Source: Basidiobolus meristosporus CBS 931.73 (taxonomy: Eukaryota; Fungi; Basidiobolomycota). Taken from it: a stretch of DNA of 64,000 bases. The stretch spans positions 140,215 through 204,214 of the forward strand of contig MCFE01000038.1 of NCBI GenBank assembly GCA_002104905.1, read 5' to 3'. A program made the translations under genes and the position numbers. Position 1 is the first letter of the stretch. Each line of letters opens with the position of its first letter. The notes under the pieces are model-generated. The model did no database searches, had not been told where the DNA came from, and saw only the letters and a list, made by a program, of their open reading frames with translations. Shown here in pieces: positions 40,033-64,000 of the stretch.

Positions 40033-42132
40033 CTAAATGGGGGTTTCCCGGTCAAGTACCTTTTGAAAGAAATCGGTAGTAAATGTAGCATCTGATGGCA
40101 TATCAGGGCCGCATGCCTGCAGGTTCCACCATTTCAAGTCCCTGTCCTTCTTACGGCCCGAAGGCTTGTGCGTGCTGTTGGATTTTACAAGCCATGACTC
40201 AGCCTTCAACTGCAGGTACGCGATTGCTTCGACGGGAGGTAAAATTCGAGTAGGGATTCTATCAGCATGCAGGCGTTTTCGCTTTTGCTTAGGAACGTAT
40301 ACATCCTGATGATCCTGATATAGTGAGGTGGACATGGCAAGAGCATACTGAAGATCTTCATCCGACTCTGGTTTGATTCGGCGGGGCTTGTGAAGAACAA
40401 CATTCGGTAAGGGTTGAATCACGACATCCTCCGTAAAGTCTTCATCCGCTTCTAGAAAAGCTACCTGGAATTCGCGAAGTTTTTGCGCCCTAGATGCTTC
40501 TGATACCTGTTCAATGGCTGGAGTAGGACTTTGATTGACCCAGTTCTGCTCCACACCAAGTTGATTCATTTGAATGATTAGCTGACTGTAGGTCAACTTT
40601 CGCAATTTGGCGCAGCATTTCAAATGAAGCATTCGAGCGTCTAATGTTGTCCATTTGAGAAGCCACGGATTTTGACAGCTTGGACAATTCGGGATGCTCA
40701 TGAGACAATGGATTCCTGTGTTGTACACTTCACTCGTTTTTACTGAGGTGGCATCCGTATTTGTTTCGGTGGATTTTGGCTTGGCAGGAATAATGTGATG
40801 CTTGCTATCTAAGCAGGCATTGATATGTAAGCTTTTGCGATCCTCATTCATAAAGGAAATATTCTCCTGACATATTAAACATCTCTCTACAGCGTTTGTA
40901 TCCAACAATACGGTCGAGTCGATGTCGGCCATCTTGGGTTGGACGAGTGCGTGCTGTGTGGATATATCAAGACAGTTATTTACATGATCTTCTTTGGCTT
41001 GGATGCTTTGAAAGGCAACTAAAGGGCATTGGCAGATAGGGCAGATCTCAATTGCTTGCTCTTGAATACTATGATCATTGGTAGGGCATGACGGGGCAAG
41101 AGCTTTTGCTGACTGAGCTTCTAGAGCAATTGTCGCGGGAATATCATCCATTGCATCTTGGGAAGCGATGTCCTCAGTAGCTCGAATGTCATATAATCTC
41201 TTGGAGTTTTGGCTGCACAGTTGAGGAGAGCAATGACTGTTCATCGATTCCGAGTCTATTAATGAGCTTGTATCTTCATGAAGTTCGAGCGTTGTGAGGC
41301 TCGCTGTCACTTTTCCTTCTTGGGATGTATCCTTTAACACTTCTAGATCTTGGTTGGTTTGATCGGTCCCTTTCTCGTCGCAACACCTTGCAGGCTCACC
41401 TAACTCTAAATGGAGCGGTGGTGATGTTTCTTGGCTATTCCGATCCTCCCTCAGAATTTTGATACTTGATGGCGTTACTTCCAATCGACATTTTGCTTCT
41501 TCACCGATGAAAGGCTCTTCCAAAGGAAACGCTTGAGTTGGTGGAATATCCTCCTTTTCTTCAGCTAAGAGTCGAGAAGCCAAAATGAATTGGTGCTTTG
41601 CAGGGGTTTCGTTTTGACTTAAAAATTGCTCCCATTTAGAACCTCGCTCAATTTTTTCCCGGTCATCTTTGATGGTTTCTATTTCCTCGGAGATGGGTGG
41701 AGTATTTTGGGGTTTCTGTGTCGTTTGGCTTAGCTTGATCTTATTTGTCGACCTGAGTGCCAATCTTCGGGGTTTGAAGGTTGAAATTGCCGCAGAGCCA
41801 AAGTACTTGGACACTAGTGAAGAGTTTAAACCAGAGTCAGTCTTCGACTCTACAACAGGATCACTGATTATTGGCCTTGCAGTCTGTTTCGTGCTCGAGG
41901 AGGCTGAACACCTATCGGCAGAACCAATTATAGAAAACAAAGAACTTTTTCCCCCAGACTTTCCGTTGGAATTCACTTTGATTGTCCTTCTTCGACTAGT
42001 TCCTAAATACTTTTTGTTTGAGGTGCCCCGTTCAGTCGTTCCATTTGTATTTGGAGAAGCCTTTATGGTACTCTTCTCCTTTGAGGCAGTCTTTATATTA
42101 AGATCACGGAAATCGTCGTCGTCGTCATCCAT
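40033..42132 (-). CDS. UBZ4-type zinc-finger/ubiquitin-binding scaffold resembling the N-terminal half of animal SLX4
   Basis: CPICQ...HVNNCLD, CLICQ...HINACLD and CPSC...HLKCC zinc fingers; UIM-like DEDLQYALAMSTSL; otherwise largely disordered. The long ORF is intronless from the ATG at 42132. Confidence 0.72.
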   Translation of the reverse strand: MDDDDDDFRDLNIKTASKEKSTIKASPNTNGTTERGTSNKKYLGTSRRRTIKVNSNGKSGGKSSLFSIIGSADRCSASSSTKQTARPIISDPVVESKTDSGLNSSLVSKYFGSAAISTFKPRRLALRSTNKIKLSQTTQKPQNTPPISEEIETIKDDREKIERGSKWEQFLSQNETPAKHQFILASRLLAEEKEDIPPTQAFPLEEPFIGEEAKCRLEVTPSSIKILREDRNSQETSPPLHLELGEPARCCDEKGTDQTNQDLEVLKDTSQEGKVTASLTTLELHEDTSSLIDSESMNSHCSPQLCSQNSKRLYDIRATEDIASQDAMDDIPATIALEAQSAKALAPSCPTNDHSIQEQAIEICPICQCPLVAFQSIQAKEDHVNNCLDISTQHALVQPKMADIDSTVLLDTNAVERCLICQENISFMNEDRKSLHINACLDSKHHIIPAKPKSTETNTDATSVKTSEVYNTGIHCLMSIPNCPSCQNPWLLKWTTLDARMLHLKCCAKLRKLTYSQLIIQMNQLGVEQNWVNQSPTPAIEQVSEASRAQKLREFQVAFLEADEDFTEDVVIQPLPNVVLHKPRRIKPESDEDLQYALAMSTSLYQDHQDVYVPKQKRKRLHADRIPTRILPPVEAIAYLQLKAESWLVKSNSTHKPSGRKKDRDLKWWNLQACGPDMPSDATFTTDFFQKVLDRETPI

Positions 42133-42460
42133 AACAAGACATTTCCGGAACACCAGGTATATTGAATAAGCCGTAGTAGGCTGACTGCAAAAGAGTGTGA
42201 AGGGGGAATATCATGTGACTTGATTCGGAACCTGGACTTGATTGGATGCCCATTATTTTGAAAATACTGATTGATTCTCTGGGACTCAATCTCTAGCAAT
42301 ATTTATTGAGGAGCCACTACGCTCTAGCCGCTCCCTTGGTGCGCGAGGAGAACATCCGATGCAATTATTATTTATTCATAGTCATTTGGCCCAAGATTAG
42401 GAAAACGATACACCAATTAATCCAACACTAGGTGATTCCAGAGCACCAAGAGAATTCACA

Positions 42461-42913
42461 TTAATCGTGATAAATAAATTGGGCTCCATTGATGTTGAAA
42501 TCGGCGTAGGTCTTAACATGAGGGCCTTTGTTGAAGTTGAAATTACTAGTGCTCACTGTTCCGTCATCGTTGATTTTTTCTACTACAGCGACATGTCCTT
42601 GTGATCCGGTGCCTTGGGTAAAGCTTGGTAACACGATGATCGAGGGAACTCTAGGCTCTCTAGAGACCTCCCAACCAGAATGCCTACGTGCGTTATTTGC
42701 CCACGATTCGGCATTGCCAGCCCATTCGGTGTGATATCCAGTTAGCTGGTAATATCTAGCGTCAGCCCAATCAGTGCATTGCCCATTTCCAAAGCGGAAC
42801 TCCAATGAGTATTCCCGCGCTTTTAGATTCGCGTTATCACGAATTGGTAAAGGATTAACAAAACCAACAAGAAGGACCAGAACAAATAGTGTAGTATTCC
42901 TAAGGAAAGGCAT
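42461..42913 (-). CDS. Secreted CHAP-domain cysteine/histidine peptidoglycan hydrolase (copy 1, minimal, 150 aa)
   Basis: Signal peptide MPFLRNTTLFVLVLLVGFVNP; GQCTDWA (catalytic Cys), GNAESWA, GHVAVVE (catalytic His), STSNFN. Intronless. Confidence 0.9.
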   Translation of the reverse strand: MPFLRNTTLFVLVLLVGFVNPLPIRDNANLKAREYSLEFRFGNGQCTDWADARYYQLTGYHTEWAGNAESWANNARRHSGWEVSREPRVPSIIVLPSFTQGTGSQGHVAVVEKINDDGTVSTSNFNFNKGPHVKTYADFNINGAQFIYHD

Positions 42914-44464
42914 TGTGTTGGTGGAAAGCGGGAAATTTGGAGAGATCGAATTGACTTGTACACGATGCCACAGAATTGAATGATTGAGAAACCTCGGCGT
43001 TTCCTCATGTTTATATAGAGGCCATGCACTTCCCTGTTTGTTAGAATGGAGATTACCAGGGGGCATCCAGTATGGATTGCAGATGCAAAGCGGAGGCTGC
43101 TCATGCCAACTGAAAACCCTCGTCTATGGTGAGAACACAAGCCCAAGATGCTAATATTTTATGTGCTGTAATAGAGGAATAGGGATTTAACGCAGAGTTA
43201 AGTTTCCACTGCGTCCTCCTCTTCCCCTTATTTTGCATTCATCCTGACTCGGTGAAAGTCAATACTCTTGCTGAAGTGCAGAGTTTATGCATGGGAGCAA
43301 TTGGTACCTTAAGCCATATGCAAATTTGAGATTTTTCGGTCGTTTAATTAACATGGAAGCTTTCCGGATTATCACATGCGACATATTACTCAATCCGGGC
43401 CTAGTAAGGTGTTTGACTGGAGGAGGCGCTGTTAATATCTAGCGTTGCTAAAGCCATATTCAATGTAGTCTCAACCTGGATACCACCACAGGAAAAGAAA
43501 TCAATATATAAAGGGATAGATGATACCCATATGCTTGGTATTCCGGTATAATTTCATTTGAGTACCTGGGGCTGGTAAGAAATGAAAACTCAAGACGCAA
43601 TCCTCTACATTTGTAAACATGGCGTTTAGATAGATCCTGAGGGCTCCTTACTTTGAGGATGTATAGACAACCTCCTTACAAGTAATACATCAATTTACAT
43701 GGTGCCACTATGCAGCGAGATAAATATTTCCTTTACCATTCAGTTGATAGCCTATTCCCAACCAACATGTAACACTTCCGAACTCATCTAGCTACAAGTG
43801 GTGTATCGGCTTTGTTTTATCCAAGAATATAGGGAAACACTGTTACACTCCACCTTCGGCCAATGTAAAAGGAGTAAGTGTTGCGGCAATAAACAATTCG
43901 GCTTACCCAATATGCTGTACGCCCATAACTAGCCTCGGTCCAACTACAAGGTTTACTATGAAGTTGCTAATCACTGCATATCTCTAATGATTCCTCTTGT
44001 CTATGGTGTTCGCCTCACTTCTGTTACTTTCCCATCCATTGAAGGGCCAGCGGTATGCAGACTTGTGATGGCTCTGCTTGAATACTATCTTCGGATTGCA
44101 TCTCGTCAATGATGCGATACACTCAACTGCTGTGCGCACTACAAGAATTAATACTTCAATGGGTTTATTTAATGTAGCGAGATGATTCGGAGACATCCCC
44201 AGGAGTACATAGCCTATTCAAAGTATTCTATTGACCTAGATTAATATATATACGTTATATATGTAAGCAAGCCAAGAACAGAACCCACTGTGTTTATCTT
44301 CTCACAGTTTGCCGAAGTTGCTGATGGATACATACCAGATCGCCACAGCTTTAACTATGCAAGCATCAAAATTTAACAACAAGGGTAGGGGAGGTAAGCA
44401 GCGTTCTTCAGCTCCGGAGGATTGATGCCCGAATTTTCAAGAGGTGGGAATGGGTTCTAAGTAA

Positions 44465-45118
44465 TTACAATGAATTGCCCTGCTGGGCCTTTTGTTTCTG
44501 TCCATTCTTCCACTCGGCTGCCTCGGTCTTTAAAGCTAGCCACCTGTTTTGACAACACTCGGGGGTTTTGCCTTTTACCAATTTAGAAACCTCCTCCCAA
44601 TTATCAAACCCGATGCTTTGTATCGCGTTGAGAAGAGTGTCATCTAATTTATGTGTCCACACATTCCAACGAGGGTCTGTTCGCAATCCTTGCAAGTACT
44701 TGGACTTCAGCTGTGCGCAAGAGCGGGTTTGGAAACCTTCTTTTTGGATGACGGTCCACACGAAACCGTGTTTTAGAACCAGTTTGTGAAGTAGTTTTTC
44801 GTCATCTTCAGTCCATACTTGTGAAGCAGCATATCCCTTGGATTTCATTAACCGTTGTAAGTTTATCTCCGGTTTCAATTTGACCAGGTAGTGGTAGCGT
44901 AGAGTTTGAAGCTGGCGACCAGGAAAACTTCTGGCGATGTAGGACCACTTCTCGCCATATTCATCAACAAGCCGAATCAACCGCTCGTTCTCCTCTGGTG
45001 TCCAATTTAAGATTCGTAGCGTCGAAGTAGTGGAGAATTGGTTTGACCTAGATCTCGTTAAAGCATAGCGAGCAAGTGGGTTGAGTTTACAAGTCAGGCG
45101 GGATTTTAACCAAGACAT
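44465..45118 (-). CDS. Three-repeat Myb/SANT protein with an Arg/Ser/Leu-rich, acid-free N-terminus
   Basis: WTPEENERL...KWSYIA...GR; WTEDDEKLL...VWTVI...TRS; WTHKLDDTL...NWEEVS...GKTPECCQNRW. Intronless. Confidence 0.85.
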   Translation of the reverse strand: MSWLKSRLTCKLNPLARYALTRSRSNQFSTTSTLRILNWTPEENERLIRLVDEYGEKWSYIARSFPGRQLQTLRYHYLVKLKPEINLQRLMKSKGYAASQVWTEDDEKLLHKLVLKHGFVWTVIQKEGFQTRSCAQLKSKYLQGLRTDPRWNVWTHKLDDTLLNAIQSIGFDNWEEVSKLVKGKTPECCQNRWLALKTEAAEWKNGQKQKAQQGNSL

Positions 45119-46521
45119 GCTCAGTTAGATTTTATGGCTCCCTGCGAAGGATATTTGAGAAGGACGCAGAAGAAACTCCAATAAAGGTATCGGAAATCGA
45201 AGATCACAGATCAATTTGCTACATCATCATTTGTATGAGTGATATTTCGTAACTAAGCCTAATCCCCATCCTAACCAACATGATTAGCGTTTCAATAGGT
45301 CTATTTAACGAAGGATCATGGATTGGACTGCGTTATTTTGGCTATACAACTTGCTCTCCTGCGACCATCTTGAGACAACCATATTGGCGGACAACTAAAT
45401 ATTTGCTCAGTATCGGTACCTGAGAATTGGGGAAATTTGCCAACACATTTGAGATATGAATGGCCGAATCAGAGGTTTGAGGGTGCAACACTTAGCTTTG
45501 GCCAGCGTATCACTCAGCCGACGGTGTAGGCCATTCTTGGCATGCTGGTACCATGACTTTTCCTGTCCGAGTTAGATAACACCGCGAAGGACTACATATG
45601 GCCCAGGTGAAGATAAAGGTACAGGTACAGGTGGGAGTACTCTGCCAATGGCTGGACGCGAATGACATCTGAATAACATCAACTCCAATCCAGTGATTCA
45701 TTCGGATATGACCAGTAATTGATTAGATGAACAGGTCTTGGTTCGTAAGGTGATACTGAAACTCCTTGATCTCTGTTTGTAACTCAATGGTTCGCCCTCC
45801 TGATTTAGGACATCAACCGCGAGGGGTTTATGCTCGTTGACGGATTGAATTCAAAGGGTGGAAGGAGCCAGGATTGGATTTAATTTCAAGACTGGCTCTC
45901 AATCGCGGCACCAGTTGAACTTGCAGCACACCCGTGGTACGGATATTCAATACTTCATTGAATTGATTTGATTGTAGTAATTAAGGTTCCTGCGCACGGG
46001 TAATATTAGCCCAACGGGATTCTAATCATATGCCCCATACTCCGATTGAGATGATCGGGATCTCCGTGGAAATGATTCAATCAATTTGAGCGCAATATGG
46101 AGGTCAGGCCCCAAAGGGCAGTTGAGAGATTCTGATTGATTGCAATGATGCTCTGGTCCAGTCAAGGATGCCATGATGTATTACCAGTTTAGTGGTTTCG
46201 AAAGATTCCTTTGAAATTTGGGAAATGCAAATGATTGTTCGAAACGAGGGTCTTCAGCTGCAAGCTAATATCGAAATCCCAGGCCGTGATTTGACAATCG
46301 CGGAATCTTCGTACGAGAAAAAGATCCCACACCAAGAGAATGAAGGGCTCAACAATACGGGTAACGCTCCTGAAAAGGAAGCTTCCGATGTCGCTCAGTG
46401 GCACTATGTTCTTCATTGAACTGCTATAAAATCCCCAGGTCGATGAATCACTACTGTATATTCCGATCTCCCTTGATCATCCCGCTCGTTAAGAAACTTT
46501 CAGGAAAAGTTGTCCCTTAAA

Positions 46522-47493
46522 ATGCATTATTTCTCTCGGTATCTCGTAGTGGCTCTTTGCCTTGGCCTTGCTGTGCAAGCCACCCCAGTAATGGTAAGCG
46601 CCAGCGTCGACGCTAGGTCTTTCCATCCTGAGGCCGCAGGTAGCCCAGGTATTTTTCGCCGCGATAGGCATTCTAGTGGTCATGGAAGAGGTGGTCGAGG
46701 AGACTCTGGTCACAGCATGAAGTCGAGTGATGGTCAGAGCTATGGCGATACGCCTGGCCATAGAATGAAATCAAGTGATGGCCAGAGTTATGGCAATACA
46801 TCTGGTTATGGCCATCGTTCTAGGCCCAGCAAGTATGGCGGTGACATGGGCCGTTCTCATGACGTTGGTAAACACAGAAAGCATAAGGGGAAAAAAGGTC
46901 ACTCGGACGATGGTGGATACGATGGTGGATACGATGGTGGATACGATGGCGGATACGATAGTGGCAATAGCGATTCAAGTGATGATGGCCAGGATGATAA
47001 TGGTGATTCGTATGGTAACTCTGATTCGGGAGACGACACTGACTCCGGTAACACCAGCACACCCACAGATAGCACCGGCGATCAAACCACAAGTGGTAGC
47101 ACCCAGAATAGCACCGATACTAGCACGAGTGCAGGCACAGGAAAGCTTGAATTCCGCTTCCATAATGGTCAATGTACTGATTGGGCAGATGCTCGCTATG
47201 CTCAACTCACTGGACACCATATCAGCTGGTCTGGAGACGCCCGGACTTGGGCAAGTAAGGCACGAAGTGCCAAAGGATGGACGGTCTCAGCTACCCCTAA
47301 GCAGCCTAGTATCATCGTCTTACAGCCAGGGGTTCAAGGTGCTGGCGGTCCAGGTCACGTTGCGGTGGTAGAGAAAATACTTTCCTCAACCACGGTCTCG
47401 ACCAGCAACTACAATTTCAACGGCGGACCATATATCAAGAAAACCGCCACCTTCAAGACAGGAAATGGAGTTGACTTCCTCTGGTATGGCTAG
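46522..47493 (+). CDS. Secreted CHAP-domain peptidoglycan hydrolase (copy 2) with long G/S/D/H-rich pro-region
   Basis: Signal peptide MHYFSRYLVVALCLGLAVQA; low-complexity linker; C-terminal GQCTDWADARYAQLTG...GHVAVVE...STSNYN. Intronless. Confidence 0.9.
   Translation: MHYFSRYLVVALCLGLAVQATPVMVSASVDARSFHPEAAGSPGIFRRDRHSSGHGRGGRGDSGHSMKSSDGQSYGDTPGHRMKSSDGQSYGNTSGYGHRSRPSKYGGDMGRSHDVGKHRKHKGKKGHSDDGGYDGGYDGGYDGGYDSGNSDSSDDGQDDNGDSYGNSDSGDDTDSGNTSTPTDSTGDQTTSGSTQNSTDTSTSAGTGKLEFRFHNGQCTDWADARYAQLTGHHISWSGDARTWASKARSAKGWTVSATPKQPSIIVLQPGVQGAGGPGHVAVVEKILSSTTVSTSNYNFNGGPYIKKTATFKTGNGVDFLWYG
46909..46956 (+). repeat. 12-bp tandem repeat (GATGGTGGATAC) x4 encoding DGGY x4
   Basis: Read directly; the fourth copy has one T>C change. 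Confidence 0.95.
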
Positions 47494-48135
47494 GATGCTT
47501 AGAACCCCTCGGTTTCCGCCCTGGATATATATGAAATTTGCTGATATGAATTGATCAAACATTCCAAATCAACTCGGACACTGGCAGTCTAATTTTGCCT
47601 TGGTTAATGGAATTGGTGCAGAAATAATAAAACTCCATCACTGAAACTAATACTTCAGTTGCCAGGCCCGTTGAATATAACAGACCAAAAGAAATGCATA
47701 CCGGATCCATAGTACCGTACAAAAGATTACAAGATGTTGATGGTAACCAGACGGCTGTGGGACTGAGTTATTGTCAATGAGGCAATTAGCATTAATATTA
47801 ATGAGTAGGATTCATTACCCTGTCATACGTACAAATTCACTAGCAGATGATGTGCAGAGCGATATTCATCCAAAACTAGAAATAATTCAACTCAAAGAAG
47901 AATATCCAGGGAAGTCCACCCGACCCTTATGCAAGCACTAACCTTTCAGAATCTTGGAAATCACTCAGGTTGTGATTCAGCCCAATCTCGAGGGTAATGA
48001 ACTCCCTAGACTACGACCGGGCGGTGAGGTACAAATTAAATACAGATGGGCTTCATTCGAGAGGTAACACGAAGATCTATATAAACACCGCATTCACCAT
48101 CACCAAGCACAAACTAACTTTCTGGCAAAGTGGCG

Positions 48136-48759
48136 ATGAATCCAACCTTCTTTTTGTGCACTCTAGCAGTCATCATATCCAGTTGTCTGATCCAGGCAAC
48201 ACTCTCAACCAATCCTCATCCTAACGATTTGCAGCCACGATACTACTATTCCTACAAGTATTCTTGGAGCTCTAATGGAGGAGACAGCGGTGGAAATGAT
48301 GACTCAAAGAGCAGGTCAAGGAGCACTCAGTATAAAAACAACAATAATAGGCATGGCAAACCAGGATCCTCCAAAAACAATGGTTATTCAGGGACCCAAG
48401 ACAAGGGAAGGCTCGTCTTTCAATTTGACAATGGGCAGTGTACCGATTGGGCCGATGCGCGTTACGCTCAACTTACTGGACATCATGTCAGCTGGTCCGG
48501 AGACGCCCGAACTTGGGCAAACAAGGCGCGAAATACTCCAGGGTGGTCAGTGTCTACCAGACCTATCAAGCCAAGCATCATCGTTTTGCAACCCGGTGTT
48601 CAGGGTGCTGGTGGTGCTGGCCATGTCGCAGTAGTTGAAAGCATCAAATCAAACGGAGAGGTGTACACAAGCAATTACAATTATAATGGTGGCCCGTATG
48701 TCAAAACATACACAACTTTTGAATCAGGATATGGCATTAGCTACATTTGGTATAAGTGA
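48136..48759 (+). CDS. Secreted CHAP-domain peptidoglycan hydrolase (copy 3)
   Basis: Signal peptide MNPTFFLCTLAVIISSCLIQA; N/S/G/K-rich linker; GQCTDWADARYAQLTGHHVSWSGDARTWA...SIIVLQPGVQGAGGAGHVAVVE...TSNYN. Intronless. Confidence 0.9.
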   Translation: MNPTFFLCTLAVIISSCLIQATLSTNPHPNDLQPRYYYSYKYSWSSNGGDSGGNDDSKSRSRSTQYKNNNNRHGKPGSSKNNGYSGTQDKGRLVFQFDNGQCTDWADARYAQLTGHHVSWSGDARTWANKARNTPGWSVSTRPIKPSIIVLQPGVQGAGGAGHVAVVESIKSNGEVYTSNYNYNGGPYVKTYTTFESGYGISYIWYK

Positions 48760-61834: not shown

Positions 61835-62066
61835 TTGTAAAAGTATTGCAGATATCTAAAATCATTGGGATAACTAGTTGATTAAGTGGTTTTCACTTAA
61901 TGATTTATTAAATATAAGGTTATATCTGTGGTTTTACATGGTCTTAGCAAACAAACACATATAATATGCTTGGGAAGGTCCCAAAAACATGTGCGCAAAG
62001 TTTGGCCAACTTACCAAAATTTCATGTTCTGGGTAACTAATGTTGTGGTGAAAATATTGTAAGTAA
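61835..62066 (+). repeat. Diverged solo copy of the 8.2-8.95 kb inverted-repeat arm
   Basis: Colinear with 8610-8843, e.g. TTTTCACTTAATGATTTATT, AAAATTTCATGTTCTGGGTA and GGTGAAAATA are shared. Confidence 0.88.
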
Positions 62067-62267
62067 AGGTTTAGGGGAGGGAAAGTCACCAATATGGGTG
62101 AAATCTTTAAAGGGAGGGAAATTTTAGGGGGGGGGGAGACAGTCACCAACAGATGAAATTGTTGTGTCAGTTAGGGGGGCTAGGGGAGGGAAAGTCACCA
62201 AGTTGGTGAAATCATTATATAAGTCAAGAACTAATCAAAGCACAAATAAAGAAGCCAATTAAGAAGT

Positions 62268-62519
62268 CTAGAACCTCTCTAATAAGTAATCTAACTTATG
62301 ATTTGTTTCATCTCTTATGTTTGTTTCAATCAAGTAAAGCTCATCAGGGGTATATATAAAATTCAAGGGCTTTGGGGGAAGTACAAATTGTAGATGTTTC
62401 TGATCAATATAATCCAAGACTGGAACCCAGCCTGGGATTAGGTGTGGTAGGAAAGGTGTGTGGACTTGTAAGTAGCTCTGCCACATAGATCTAAGATGGT
62501 CCTGAGCCAGTAGTCTTGG
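62268..62519 (-). pseudogene. 5'-truncated ORF fragment (83 codons plus stop) starting at an internal telomeric-repeat junction
   Basis: The frame is open from the CCCTAA junction: PRLLAQDHLRSMWQSYLQVHTPFLPHLIPGWVPV...LDYLLERF*. It is followed by a 3' UTR homologous to that of the distal ORF. Confidence 0.5.
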
Positions 62520-62655
62520 GTTAGGGTTAGGGGAGGGAAAGTCACCAAGGTAGGTGAAATCTTTATTTGAATGCAGACAAGTCTAACTACAAATAAAGAA
62601 GCCAGCTGGGAATAGAAGATTCCCAAAGTAAACACTAAGTTGAATATGAATAAAT

Positions 62656-63384
62656 CTAAGCTAAAGTTAAGGCAGTATCCCAGAGTACACTGGAGTTCAG
62701 GTTCATGGGGGAGTGAAGTAGATAAGCTTGAGAGATATAATAATCTTTGAGATAGTGGGTAACAGCAGGTAAAGGGAAGTTTTTGATAAGTGAAGTGAAT
62801 CTTGAGAGCAGAGATTCCTCTAATGAGAAGGTCTTGTAAACTGGAGAATCAGGAAACTCTTTAAAGGCATGTTCAGTAGGTTCCCAGTAAAACTGGTCAG
62901 AGACATTTTGAGAGAACTCTTTAGCAATACTTTTATCAAGTACTACCTCCAGAGTGTGATTGTTGATAAATCTCATGTTGACAATCTTGGATAAATTGTA
63001 ACCTTGTTGCTTGAGATACATCCTATGCTCAGATATAGGAATGAACTCCACATTGGCAAAGTAGCAGACAGCCCAGTCAGTAGCAGGAGGCAAATCAGAA
63101 GTAGCAGGAAACTTTCTTTTAGTCTTGGGAGGAGCAACAGGATGTCTTGAGGAAGCAGGAACAGGCTTTTTGACAGCTTCAGAGTAGGAAGAGTGAGCAG
63201 GAGCAGATGATTCTTGGGGAGTCTTGTTGACAGGAACAGCTGGCAGAGAGACAATAGATTCTTGCAGATCAGAGAAGGCAGAAAACAGCTTTTGAACTTG
63301 TTTCTTGAGTAAAGCATTTTCAGCTTCAACAAGTGCAAGCCTTTCCTCAAGGAAGGAAATCTGAAGGGAATGGAGTGAAGGCAT
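62656..63384 (-). CDS. Gag/ORF1-like protein of the terminal element (coiled coil + Pro/Ser linker + RRM-like region)
   Basis: Intact 242-aa intronless ORF: LEERLALVEAENALLKKQVQKL (coiled coil), SYSEAVKK, then WAVCYFANV...RMYLKQQGYNLSKIVNMRFINNHTLEVVL. This layout is typical of non-LTR/Penelope-like ORF1 proteins (inference). Confidence 0.62.
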   Translation of the reverse strand: MPSLHSLQISFLEERLALVEAENALLKKQVQKLFSAFSDLQESIVSLPAVPVNKTPQESSAPAHSSYSEAVKKPVPASSRHPVAPPKTKRKFPATSDLPPATDWAVCYFANVEFIPISEHRMYLKQQGYNLSKIVNMRFINNHTLEVVLDKSIAKEFSQNVSDQFYWEPTEHAFKEFPDSPVYKTFSLEESLLSRFTSLIKNFPLPAVTHYLKDYYISQAYLLHSPMNLNSSVLWDTALTLA

Positions 63385-63424
63385 AAGAAATAAGAAGAAG
63401 AGGGTAGGATGGGGTGGGAGGGTG

Positions 63425-63753
63425 GGAAAATTAGCAGGGAGAAGAGAAGGAAGGAGCAAAAATTCCAGAAGTCAGAATTTATAGATGGATGGACAAGGGT
63501 AGATGGATGGATTATTCCTGGGTTAGGAAAATTAGCAGGGAGAAGAGAAGGAAGGAGCAAAAATTCCAGAAGTCAGAATTTATAGATGGATGGACAAGGG
63601 TAGATGGATGGATTATTCCTGGGTTAGGAAAATTAGCAGGGAGAAGAGAAGGAAGGAGCAAAAATTCCAGAAGTCAGAATTTATAGATGGATGGACAAGG
63701 GTAGATGGATGGATTATTCCTGGGTTAGGAAAATTAGCAGGGAGAAGAGAAGG
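63425..63753 (+). repeat. 101-bp tandem repeat, 3 full copies plus a partial fourth, abutting the telomere
   Basis: Units start at 63425, 63526, 63627 and 63728 and look identical. Each ends in a telomere-like GGGTTA(GG). Confidence 0.95.
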
Positions 63754-64000
63754 GTTAGGGTTAGGGTTAGGGTTAGGGTTAGGGTTAGGTTAGGGTTAGG
63801 GTTAGGGTTAGGGTTAGGGTTAGGGTTAGGGTTAGGGTTAGGGTTAGGGTTAGGGTTAGGGTTAGGGTTAGGGTTAGGGTTAGGGTTAGGGTTAGGGTTA
63901 GGGTTAGGGTTAGGGTTAGGGTTAGGGTTAGGGTTAGGGTTAGGGTTAGGGTTAGGGTTAGGGTTAGGGTTAGGGTTAGGGTTAGGGTTAGGTTAGGGTT
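63752..64000 (+). repeat. Telomere, (TTAGGG)n, about 41 units, right chromosome end
   Basis: G-rich strand runs 5'->3' to the end of the window. Two TTAGG variants at 63785 and 63988. Confidence 0.99.

Follow-up and report, generated by a model that had tools for sequence, protein, structure and literature searches.

Three CHAP genes near a chromosome end

The terminal 64 kb of contig MCFE01000038.1 (204,214 bp) of the fungus Basidiobolus meristosporus CBS 931.73 (assembly GCA_002104905.1), referred to here as the window, contain a cluster of three genes whose products end in a CHAP domain. An earlier note on this DNA had placed three CHAP paralogs within 6.3 kb. Exactly three open reading frames (ORFs) encoding the domain were found in the 64-kb window, all of them between 42461 and 48759; no further copies were found elsewhere in it, and no CHAP remnants in the three intergenic gaps. 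Copy 3 matches the contig letter for letter. The three ORFs share a common layout, consisting of a signal-peptide-like N-terminus, a variable linker and the C-terminal CHAP domain, and the public annotation labels them only as "hypothetical" or "peptidase C51 domain-containing". The genes, and the repeats within one of them, are the following.

42461 to 42913, minus strand: copy 1 (P0033), ORF for a CHAP protein of 150 amino acids (aa); Pfam CHAP E 2.8e-16, 60.2 bits
46522 to 47493, plus strand: copy 2, uninterrupted ORF of 323 aa from the first ATG; Pfam CHAP E 5.1e-14, 53.0 bits
46706 to 46964, plus strand: coding tandem repeats in the linker of copy 2, with 2 copies of a 48-nt unit (46706-46799) and 4.8 copies of a 12-nt unit, the GGYD repeat (46907-46964)
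48136 to 48759, plus strand: copy 3 (P0001), ORF of 207 aa; Pfam CHAP E 5e-15, 56.2 bits

The linkers differ greatly in length and composition. In copy 1, a signal-peptide-like segment (residues ~1-22) is followed by a short linker and a domain of ~117 aa; a longer ORF reaching to 43066 represents read-through of the 5' leader, and the ATG at 42913 is shared with the start of the ortholog. Copy 2 has a linker of ~185 aa rich in Gly, Ser, Asp and Thr before its domain (47137-47490), while the Asn/Ser/Gly-rich linker of copy 3 contains a PRYYYSYKY motif and precedes a domain at 48403-48756. The signal peptides reported earlier are plausible: by a hydropathy heuristic and by eye, all three copies have a signal-peptide-like h-region (score 3.0-3.4) ending in a VQA/IQA/VNP-type sequence. 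By the same heuristic, 28 of the 36 family members have such a start, with a recurrent end of the VQA-LP type.

Copy 1 is both inverted and more diverged, as had been noted. It lies on the minus strand and shares 58-60% amino-acid identity with copies 2 and 3, which are 71.5% identical to each other. The claim that copies 2 and 3 share near-identical DNA blocks holds only for a short stretch. The quoted block of 30 nt is identical at 28 positions but is just the best-conserved short piece; identity is 74% over 240 nt and 69% over the 118 domain codons, and no DNA similarity between these two copies was found beyond the CHAP-coding part.

Copies 1 and 3 are single-exon genes in the public annotation, where the gene span equals the length of the coding sequence (CDS), and several neighbours are spliced. 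To this extent, the contrast once drawn between intronless copies and intron-rich neighbours stands, but it fails for the intronless Myb gene inside the cluster and for the public model of copy 2. That model is spliced, encodes 280 aa and spans 46225-47493, so that its start precedes the ATG of the signal peptide by 297 nt. Its product has no Pfam match on record and is absent among the protein matches listed (120 of 147) in the search described below. Copy 2 is probably intronless from the ATG at 46522, and the public model is probably wrong, because the ORF from this ATG begins with a predicted signal peptide similar to that of Basidiobolus ranarum P0009, the TATA box at 46425 would fall within the intron of the spliced model, and both single-intron GT-AG solutions yielding 280 aa delete the signal peptide.

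The assignment to the CHAP family was upheld by comparison with Pfam PF05257, against which the three copies score 53-60 bits, with a cut-off of 26, and reach E-values of 1e-14 to 1e-16. The nearest solved structures by sequence are staphylococcal CHAP proteins, namely 2k3a (E 1.5e-10 with copy 3), followed by 2lrj and 5t1q. An AlphaFold2 model of the copy 3 domain (P0001:90-207; mean pLDDT 85.2, pTM 0.82) agrees and predicts the papain-like alpha+beta CHAP fold. The best 20 matches of this model in the PDB are all CHAP wall hydrolases (Foldseek, probability 1.00), led by Staphylococcus aureus 5t1q (TMq 0.84), then the phage phi812 hub, LysK CHAPK and PcsB. Compared with staphylococcal SsaA-type and phage CHAP hydrolases (5t1q, 2k3a, 2lrj, LysK CHAPK 4csh, PcsB 4cgk), the fungal copies have the same fold (TMq 0.6-0.84) and the same placement of Cys and His, but they are only 20-33% identical and lack an SH3b, LysM or amidase partner domain.

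The catalytic residues, described earlier as an intact Cys (GQC) and His (GHV), are indeed invariant. The Cys of GQCT and the His of GHVA are found in all three copies and throughout a 22-sequence alignment, and they align with the motifs of 2k3a and 2lrj. In the folded copy 3 domain, helix 13-25 begins with the Cys (residue 13) and strand 74-81 with the His (residue 74). The third polar residue, likewise invariant, is an Asn, located 17 residues after the His in TSN(Y/F)N, where 2k3a has the Glu of SEMN. Judged from sequence, the products of the three genes are predicted to be small cysteine peptidases/amidases of the CHAP family (MEROPS C51) that are secreted.

The position near a chromosome end, also part of the earlier note, is borne out by a telomere repeat at the contig end. 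This run of TTAGGG, which is also the unit of human telomeres, begins at 63755; the three genes are thus 15.0-21.3 kb away from the chromosome end, and 15.0 kb separate the end of copy 3 from the run. A pattern scan of the sequence placed a putative TATA box before each CHAP gene.

43011 to 43017, minus strand: TATA box TATATAA, 104 nt before the start codon of copy 1
46425 to 46431, plus strand: TATA box TATAAAA, 97 nt before the start codon of copy 2
48078 to 48084, plus strand: TATA box TATATAA, 58 nt before the start codon of copy 3
63755 to 64000, plus strand: TTAGGG telomere repeat at the contig end

No excess of bacterial sigma-70 promoter or terminator patterns was found at the CHAP genes by the same type of scan. 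The GC content at third codon positions (GC3) is 0.45-0.48 in the CHAP domains and 0.43-0.49 in neighbouring host genes, compared with a mean of 0.59 in the bacterial homologs. Neighbours in the public annotation are a 470-aa gene, a three-repeat Myb gene, SURF6/RRP14, a protein kinase and a hybrid histidine kinase; of these, the 470-aa gene, SURF6/RRP14 and the protein kinase are intron-bearing, as their spans far exceed the length of their CDS. The arrangement recurs in a second species. On a contig of B. ranarum AG-B5 (GCA_040143965.1), the CHAP genes P0012 and P0002 precede SURF6/RRP14 in the same order and orientation as copy 2, copy 3 and SURF6 in the window, and another B. ranarum contig (L079) carries a Myb gene, CHAP gene P0017 and CHAP gene P0032, the last being the ortholog of copy 1. 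The CHAP genes are fungal chromosomal genes and not contamination, as had been argued before, because they reside on a 204-kb contig with a telomere, intron-bearing flanks, synteny in B. ranarum, host-like GC3 and TATA boxes.

An old Basidiobolus family with bacterial kin

Copy 3 was compared with 5.8 billion proteins in a word-indexed search, and the matches listed (120 of 147) include 35 from eukaryotes, all of them belonging to B. meristosporus or B. ranarum. The B. meristosporus share of the matches listed comprises at least 17 clusters at 90% identity, with 34 member sequences, to which copy 2 adds one more. CHAP genes are present at no fewer than five loci of the B. meristosporus genome. 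One of them (L078:10001-18792, on contig MCFE01000090.1) holds at least six CHAP genes within 9 kb, 11-20 kb from the contig end, including several near-identical genes of 181 aa whose clusters have 6-7 member sequences. This six-gene array is young, unlike the old copies of the window. At another locus (L080), two CHAP genes flank a further Myb gene and a polysaccharide lyase, and two more B. meristosporus loci each have a pair of CHAP genes.

One subfamily of Basidiobolus paralogs on other contigs (P0018, P0020, P0021 and P0022) carries a Cys-rich N-terminal module between the signal peptide and the CHAP domain. The module reads C-P-x-G-N-G-L-Y-C-G ... L-Y-x-C; it matches nothing in Pfam and may serve in binding.

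In a tree built with IQ-TREE from 107 domains and 120 columns, no two of the window copies fall into the same subclade. The partner of copy 1 is B. ranarum P0032 (100/99; domain identity 86%, dN 0.076), and copy 2 groups with B. ranarum P0012/P0009 (100/98; domain identity 88-89%). Copy 3 is a long branch within a nine-member group (98/98), where its tree partner is P0007 (83/57); its top identity and its linker motif point instead to B. ranarum P0002, the positional counterpart before SURF6. About ten cross-species pairs are well supported in this tree. Some ten paralogs therefore existed already in the ancestor shared by the two main Basidiobolus clades, and the division of the family into about ten lineages predates the separation of B. 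meristosporus from B. ranarum. Between orthologs, nonsynonymous divergence (dN) of the CHAP domain is 0.07-0.14 and synonymous divergence (dS) is saturated (1.8 to undefined). This combination of low dN and saturated dS indicates long-lasting, strong purifying selection on the domain.

These results do not support the idea of a local expansion near the chromosome end. The three copies belong to three old subclades, have B. ranarum counterparts in synteny and form part of a family of ~35 genes at five or more loci. A recent tandem duplication or gene conversion of copies 2 and 3 was considered and rejected, because their DNA identity of 69-74% is confined to the domain, their flanking sequences show no relationship and the two copies have distinct orthologs, in separate old lineages. 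A description as a subtelomeric family was also considered and is not claimed. Four of the five B. meristosporus loci examined lie no more than 21 kb from a contig end (rough chance estimate 0.02), but a telomere is proven only at the contig end of this window, and the start of contig MCFE01000319.1, near which CHAP genes also lie, is not telomeric.

Outside Basidiobolus, all named matches to copy 3 among those listed are from Chloroflexota/Ktedonobacteria (Thermogemmatispora, Dictyobacter), the remainder being unnamed metagenome proteins. The Ktedonobacteria matches are "surface antigen" proteins of ~330 aa with 50-60% identity over the domain. A scan of 185,579 prokaryotic species genomes, one per species, returned 227 relatives, and the best 75 loci were all from Chloroflexota, nearly all of them labelled Ktedonobacteria. 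When 1.84 billion representatives were searched exhaustively with HMMER, 142 proteins reached E <=1e-30 and 4,763 reached 1e-3. The nearest structure cluster in the Atlas is a 331-aa Chloroflexota C51 family (TM 0.92), and every one of the Atlas neighbours is bacterial.

A single clade unites the 35 Basidiobolus domains both in IQ-TREE (100/100) and in a second tree of 369 rows made with FastTree (99). In IQ-TREE, this clade lies within a Ktedonobacteria polytomy (96/86), the nesting nodes being supported at 100/91, 100/93 and 96/86; other Chloroflexota paralogs and unnamed metagenome proteins fall outside the polytomy. A long stem (0.8 changes per site) leads to the fungal clade. FastTree places Dictyobacter as its sister (88), whereas IQ-TREE does not resolve the sister group. 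Taken from sequence comparison, these data point firmly to one origin of the Basidiobolus family, with Ktedonobacteria, filamentous soil Chloroflexota, as its closest kin. The direction of transfer would be from bacteria to fungus, since one fungal genus stands against many bacterial genera.

The Ktedonobacteria "surface antigen"/C51 CHAP proteins (Dictyobacter, Thermogemmatispora, Tengunoibacter) have the same GQCT...GHVAVVE...TSN.N motifs, and the Asn of the third catalytic position is kept in the fungal and bacterial groups alike. Across the two groups, 41 strongly conserved columns are identical and a single difference is fixed, adjoining the catalytic Cys (GQCT-D in the fungus, GQCT-Y in the bacteria). 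The two groups differ mainly outside the domain. The bacterial proteins are ~300-360 aa long, start with a membrane anchor or signal and have a region of ~200 aa before the domain, whereas the fungal proteins (150-323 aa) have a eukaryotic signal-peptide-like start and linkers that are either short or of low complexity, and their genes have TATA promoters and a GC3 like that of the host. Tandem arrays are common to both. Up to five CHAP genes occur in 6.3 kb in Ktedonobacteria bacterium brp13 (L035), and further bacterial arrays were seen at L006, L024, L054 and L056. One metagenome relative (P0137, 545 aa) has a Ser/Thr protein kinase fused to the CHAP domain.

Neighbouring genes and terminal sequences

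Between copies 1 and 2 lies a Myb gene, which is a host gene.

44465 to 45118, minus strand: intronless three-repeat Myb gene, 217 aa; Pfam Myb_DNA-binding E 1.4e-28

Myb genes also adjoin CHAP genes in B. ranarum (L079:425-1131) and at the second B. meristosporus locus (L080:3294-3959). The Myb proteins of these two loci are only 34-41% identical to that of the window, so the linkage between Myb and CHAP genes is old. At the latter locus, a polysaccharide lyase family 14 (PL14) gene at L080:4191-5101, between Myb and CHAP, is possibly another foreign gene.

On the minus strand at 40033-42153 is a long ORF, 706 aa as read and 470 aa in the public model, without a Pfam match. It has three spaced Cys-x2-Cys ... 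His-x3-Cys motifs (CPICQ, CLICQ, CPSCQ) that resemble UBZ-type zinc fingers. Between the cluster and the telomere, from 56477 of the window onwards (L076:18344-20626), lies the hybrid histidine kinase gene, whose product of 1362 aa has two HisKA/HATPase/receiver sets. A minus-strand ORF region of coiled-coil-like character occupies 61900-63754, just below the telomere, and a unit of ~90 nt is present in three tandem copies at roughly 63420-63750. Short G-rich motifs (aggggagggaaagtcacca) are scattered further inward from these telomere-side repeats.

Putative function and comparison with known systems

An ancestral bacterial CHAP gene was probably taken up once and then gave rise to secreted peptidoglycan-cutting enzymes in Basidiobolus. 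In such a course of events, a bacterial CHAP gene would have been transferred a single time into an ancestor of the genus. The long bacterial N-terminal part would have been lost, a eukaryotic signal peptide, a TATA promoter and a host-like composition would have been gained, and the gene would have multiplied via tandem and block duplication. With their Cys-His-Asn triad, the secreted enzymes would cut bacterial peptidoglycan, a polymer that the fungus itself does not have, at a peptide or amide bond of its stem or cross-bridge. Bacteria met in dung, soil and the guts of amphibians and reptiles would thereby be lysed or weakened, which may serve competition, feeding, or both.

The fold, the triad, the secretion signal, the purifying selection and the expansion together argue for an extracellular, peptidoglycan-cutting function, and an antibacterial role may be proposed from these sequence features. 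Basidiobolus inhabits guts and co-varies with the structure of the gut bacterial community (PMC10964425), and it is rich in genes acquired from bacteria by horizontal gene transfer (HGT) (PMC7466969).

Several points weigh against this reading. The single HGT proposed in the earlier note is supported by the one Basidiobolus clade and its bacterial nearest kin, but the approximately unbiased (AU) test does not prove the nesting: a tree with all Chloroflexota-type rows as a clade excluding Basidiobolus was not rejected (p 0.39). The placement within Ktedonobacteria thus rests on the maximum-likelihood tree of 120 columns and on taxon distribution. The distant outgroups in the tree are unnamed metagenome proteins, and the genome scan favours the closest kin because its two peptide patterns come from this subfamily. 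Finally, the long fungal stem leaves room for a changed substrate.

A far more ambitious version of the same account is doubtful. In it, ~35 diversified bacteriolytic CHAP enzymes would derive from one Ktedonobacteria gene, and the paralogs, through their fast-evolving linkers and added modules, would be aimed at different wall types. Together with bacterial-type peptides, the enzymes would be a main factor shaping the gut bacteria of amphibians and reptiles, and the linked Myb would act as a local regulator.

Among the alternatives, the one that survives best, though still unlikely, keeps the origin and the fold but not the killing. The enzymes would act on free peptidoglycan fragments, which they would trim or degrade. 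The fungus would gain amino acids and amino sugars in this way, or it would clear away signals perceived by the immune system of the animal host or by the bacteria themselves. Many lytic CHAP enzymes use a wall-binding module on intact walls, and most of the fungal copies have no recognisable module of this kind, while LysM/SH3 partners are present in the Atlas neighbours. However, single-domain CHAP proteins such as CHAPK, which matches the fold of the copy 3 model, are lytic by themselves. The gut habitat of Basidiobolus (PMC10964425) would also suit scavenging or signal removal, but ~35 genes with fast-changing linkers are more in keeping with an arms race or a wide range of targets than with housekeeping scavenging.

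Re-use of the domain for a substrate other than peptidoglycan is improbable. Candidates for such a substrate would be an amide in wall proteins of the fungus itself, a gamma-glutamyl compound as for glutathionylspermidine (Gsp) amidase, or a secreted product that is a peptide or of non-ribosomal origin. Besides the stem length, the fixed Asp in place of Tyr beside the catalytic Cys would fit this idea, as would the many bacterial-type peptides made by Basidiobolus (PMC7466969). Gsp amidase has the same fold, but only at a TM of ~0.6, and wall hydrolases account for all of the best matches in structure and in sequence. The identity of 41 conserved columns between fungus and bacteria, with only one fixed difference, likewise speaks against a new substrate.

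That no bacteria-to-fungus transfer took place, whether through contamination or mis-assembly or because an old eukaryotic family passed from fungus to Ktedonobacteria, is highly improbable: the unrooted tree gives no direction and the AU test allows Basidiobolus outside the bacterial group, but contamination conflicts with the telomere-bearing contig, its intron-bearing flanks, the synteny in a second species and assembly and the host-like composition, and reverse transfer with the presence of only Basidiobolus among the eukaryotic matches listed and with bacterial homologs spanning many Ktedonobacteria genera and families, each with several paralogs.

A once-acquired family of secreted peptidoglycan-cutting enzymes would have a counterpart in the oomycete Saprolegnia parasitica, which has seven secreted CHAP genes of proposed bacterial origin, their donor not named (PMC3681718). 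Both are eukaryotes with a duplicated secreted CHAP family attributed to bacterial transfer, but they belong to different kingdoms. No Saprolegnia protein occurs among the listed matches to copy 3, so the two families, which have not been aligned to each other, were probably acquired independently.

Other domesticated bacterial wall hydrolases are the Dae amidases of ticks and mites, derived from type VI Tae effectors, and the GH25 lysozymes. These resemble the Basidiobolus case in that a captured bacterial peptidoglycan-cutting enzyme received a signal peptide and is used outside the cell. They belong to other folds or families and came from other donors, and their antibacterial action has been proven by experiment, whereas such action is a prediction for the Basidiobolus family.

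In the genome of CBS 931.73, 806 bacterial HGT candidates have been reported, mostly intronless, host-like in composition and flanked by fungal genes (Tabima et al. 2020; PMC7466969). The CHAP genes of the same genome bear the same signatures. The paper centres on secondary-metabolite genes, and its text contains no mention of CHAP or peptidoglycan, nor do the supplements of Ciach 2024 mention CHAP. A literature search for Basidiobolus and CHAP found no paper. A broader search for fungal CHAP returned only the Saprolegnia case and no characterised fungal CHAP system, in line with the earlier note, which knew of none.

Known eukaryotic captures of bacterial wall hydrolases for use against bacteria are few, and this large, old, conserved and expanded CHAP family would add a case from a culturable gut and soil fungus, with an unusual donor group, the Ktedonobacteria. 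Lytic enzymes that are small and have a single domain are of practical interest as enzybiotic scaffolds. For the biology of Basidiobolus, the family would give a testable molecular handle on the interaction of the fungus with gut bacteria.

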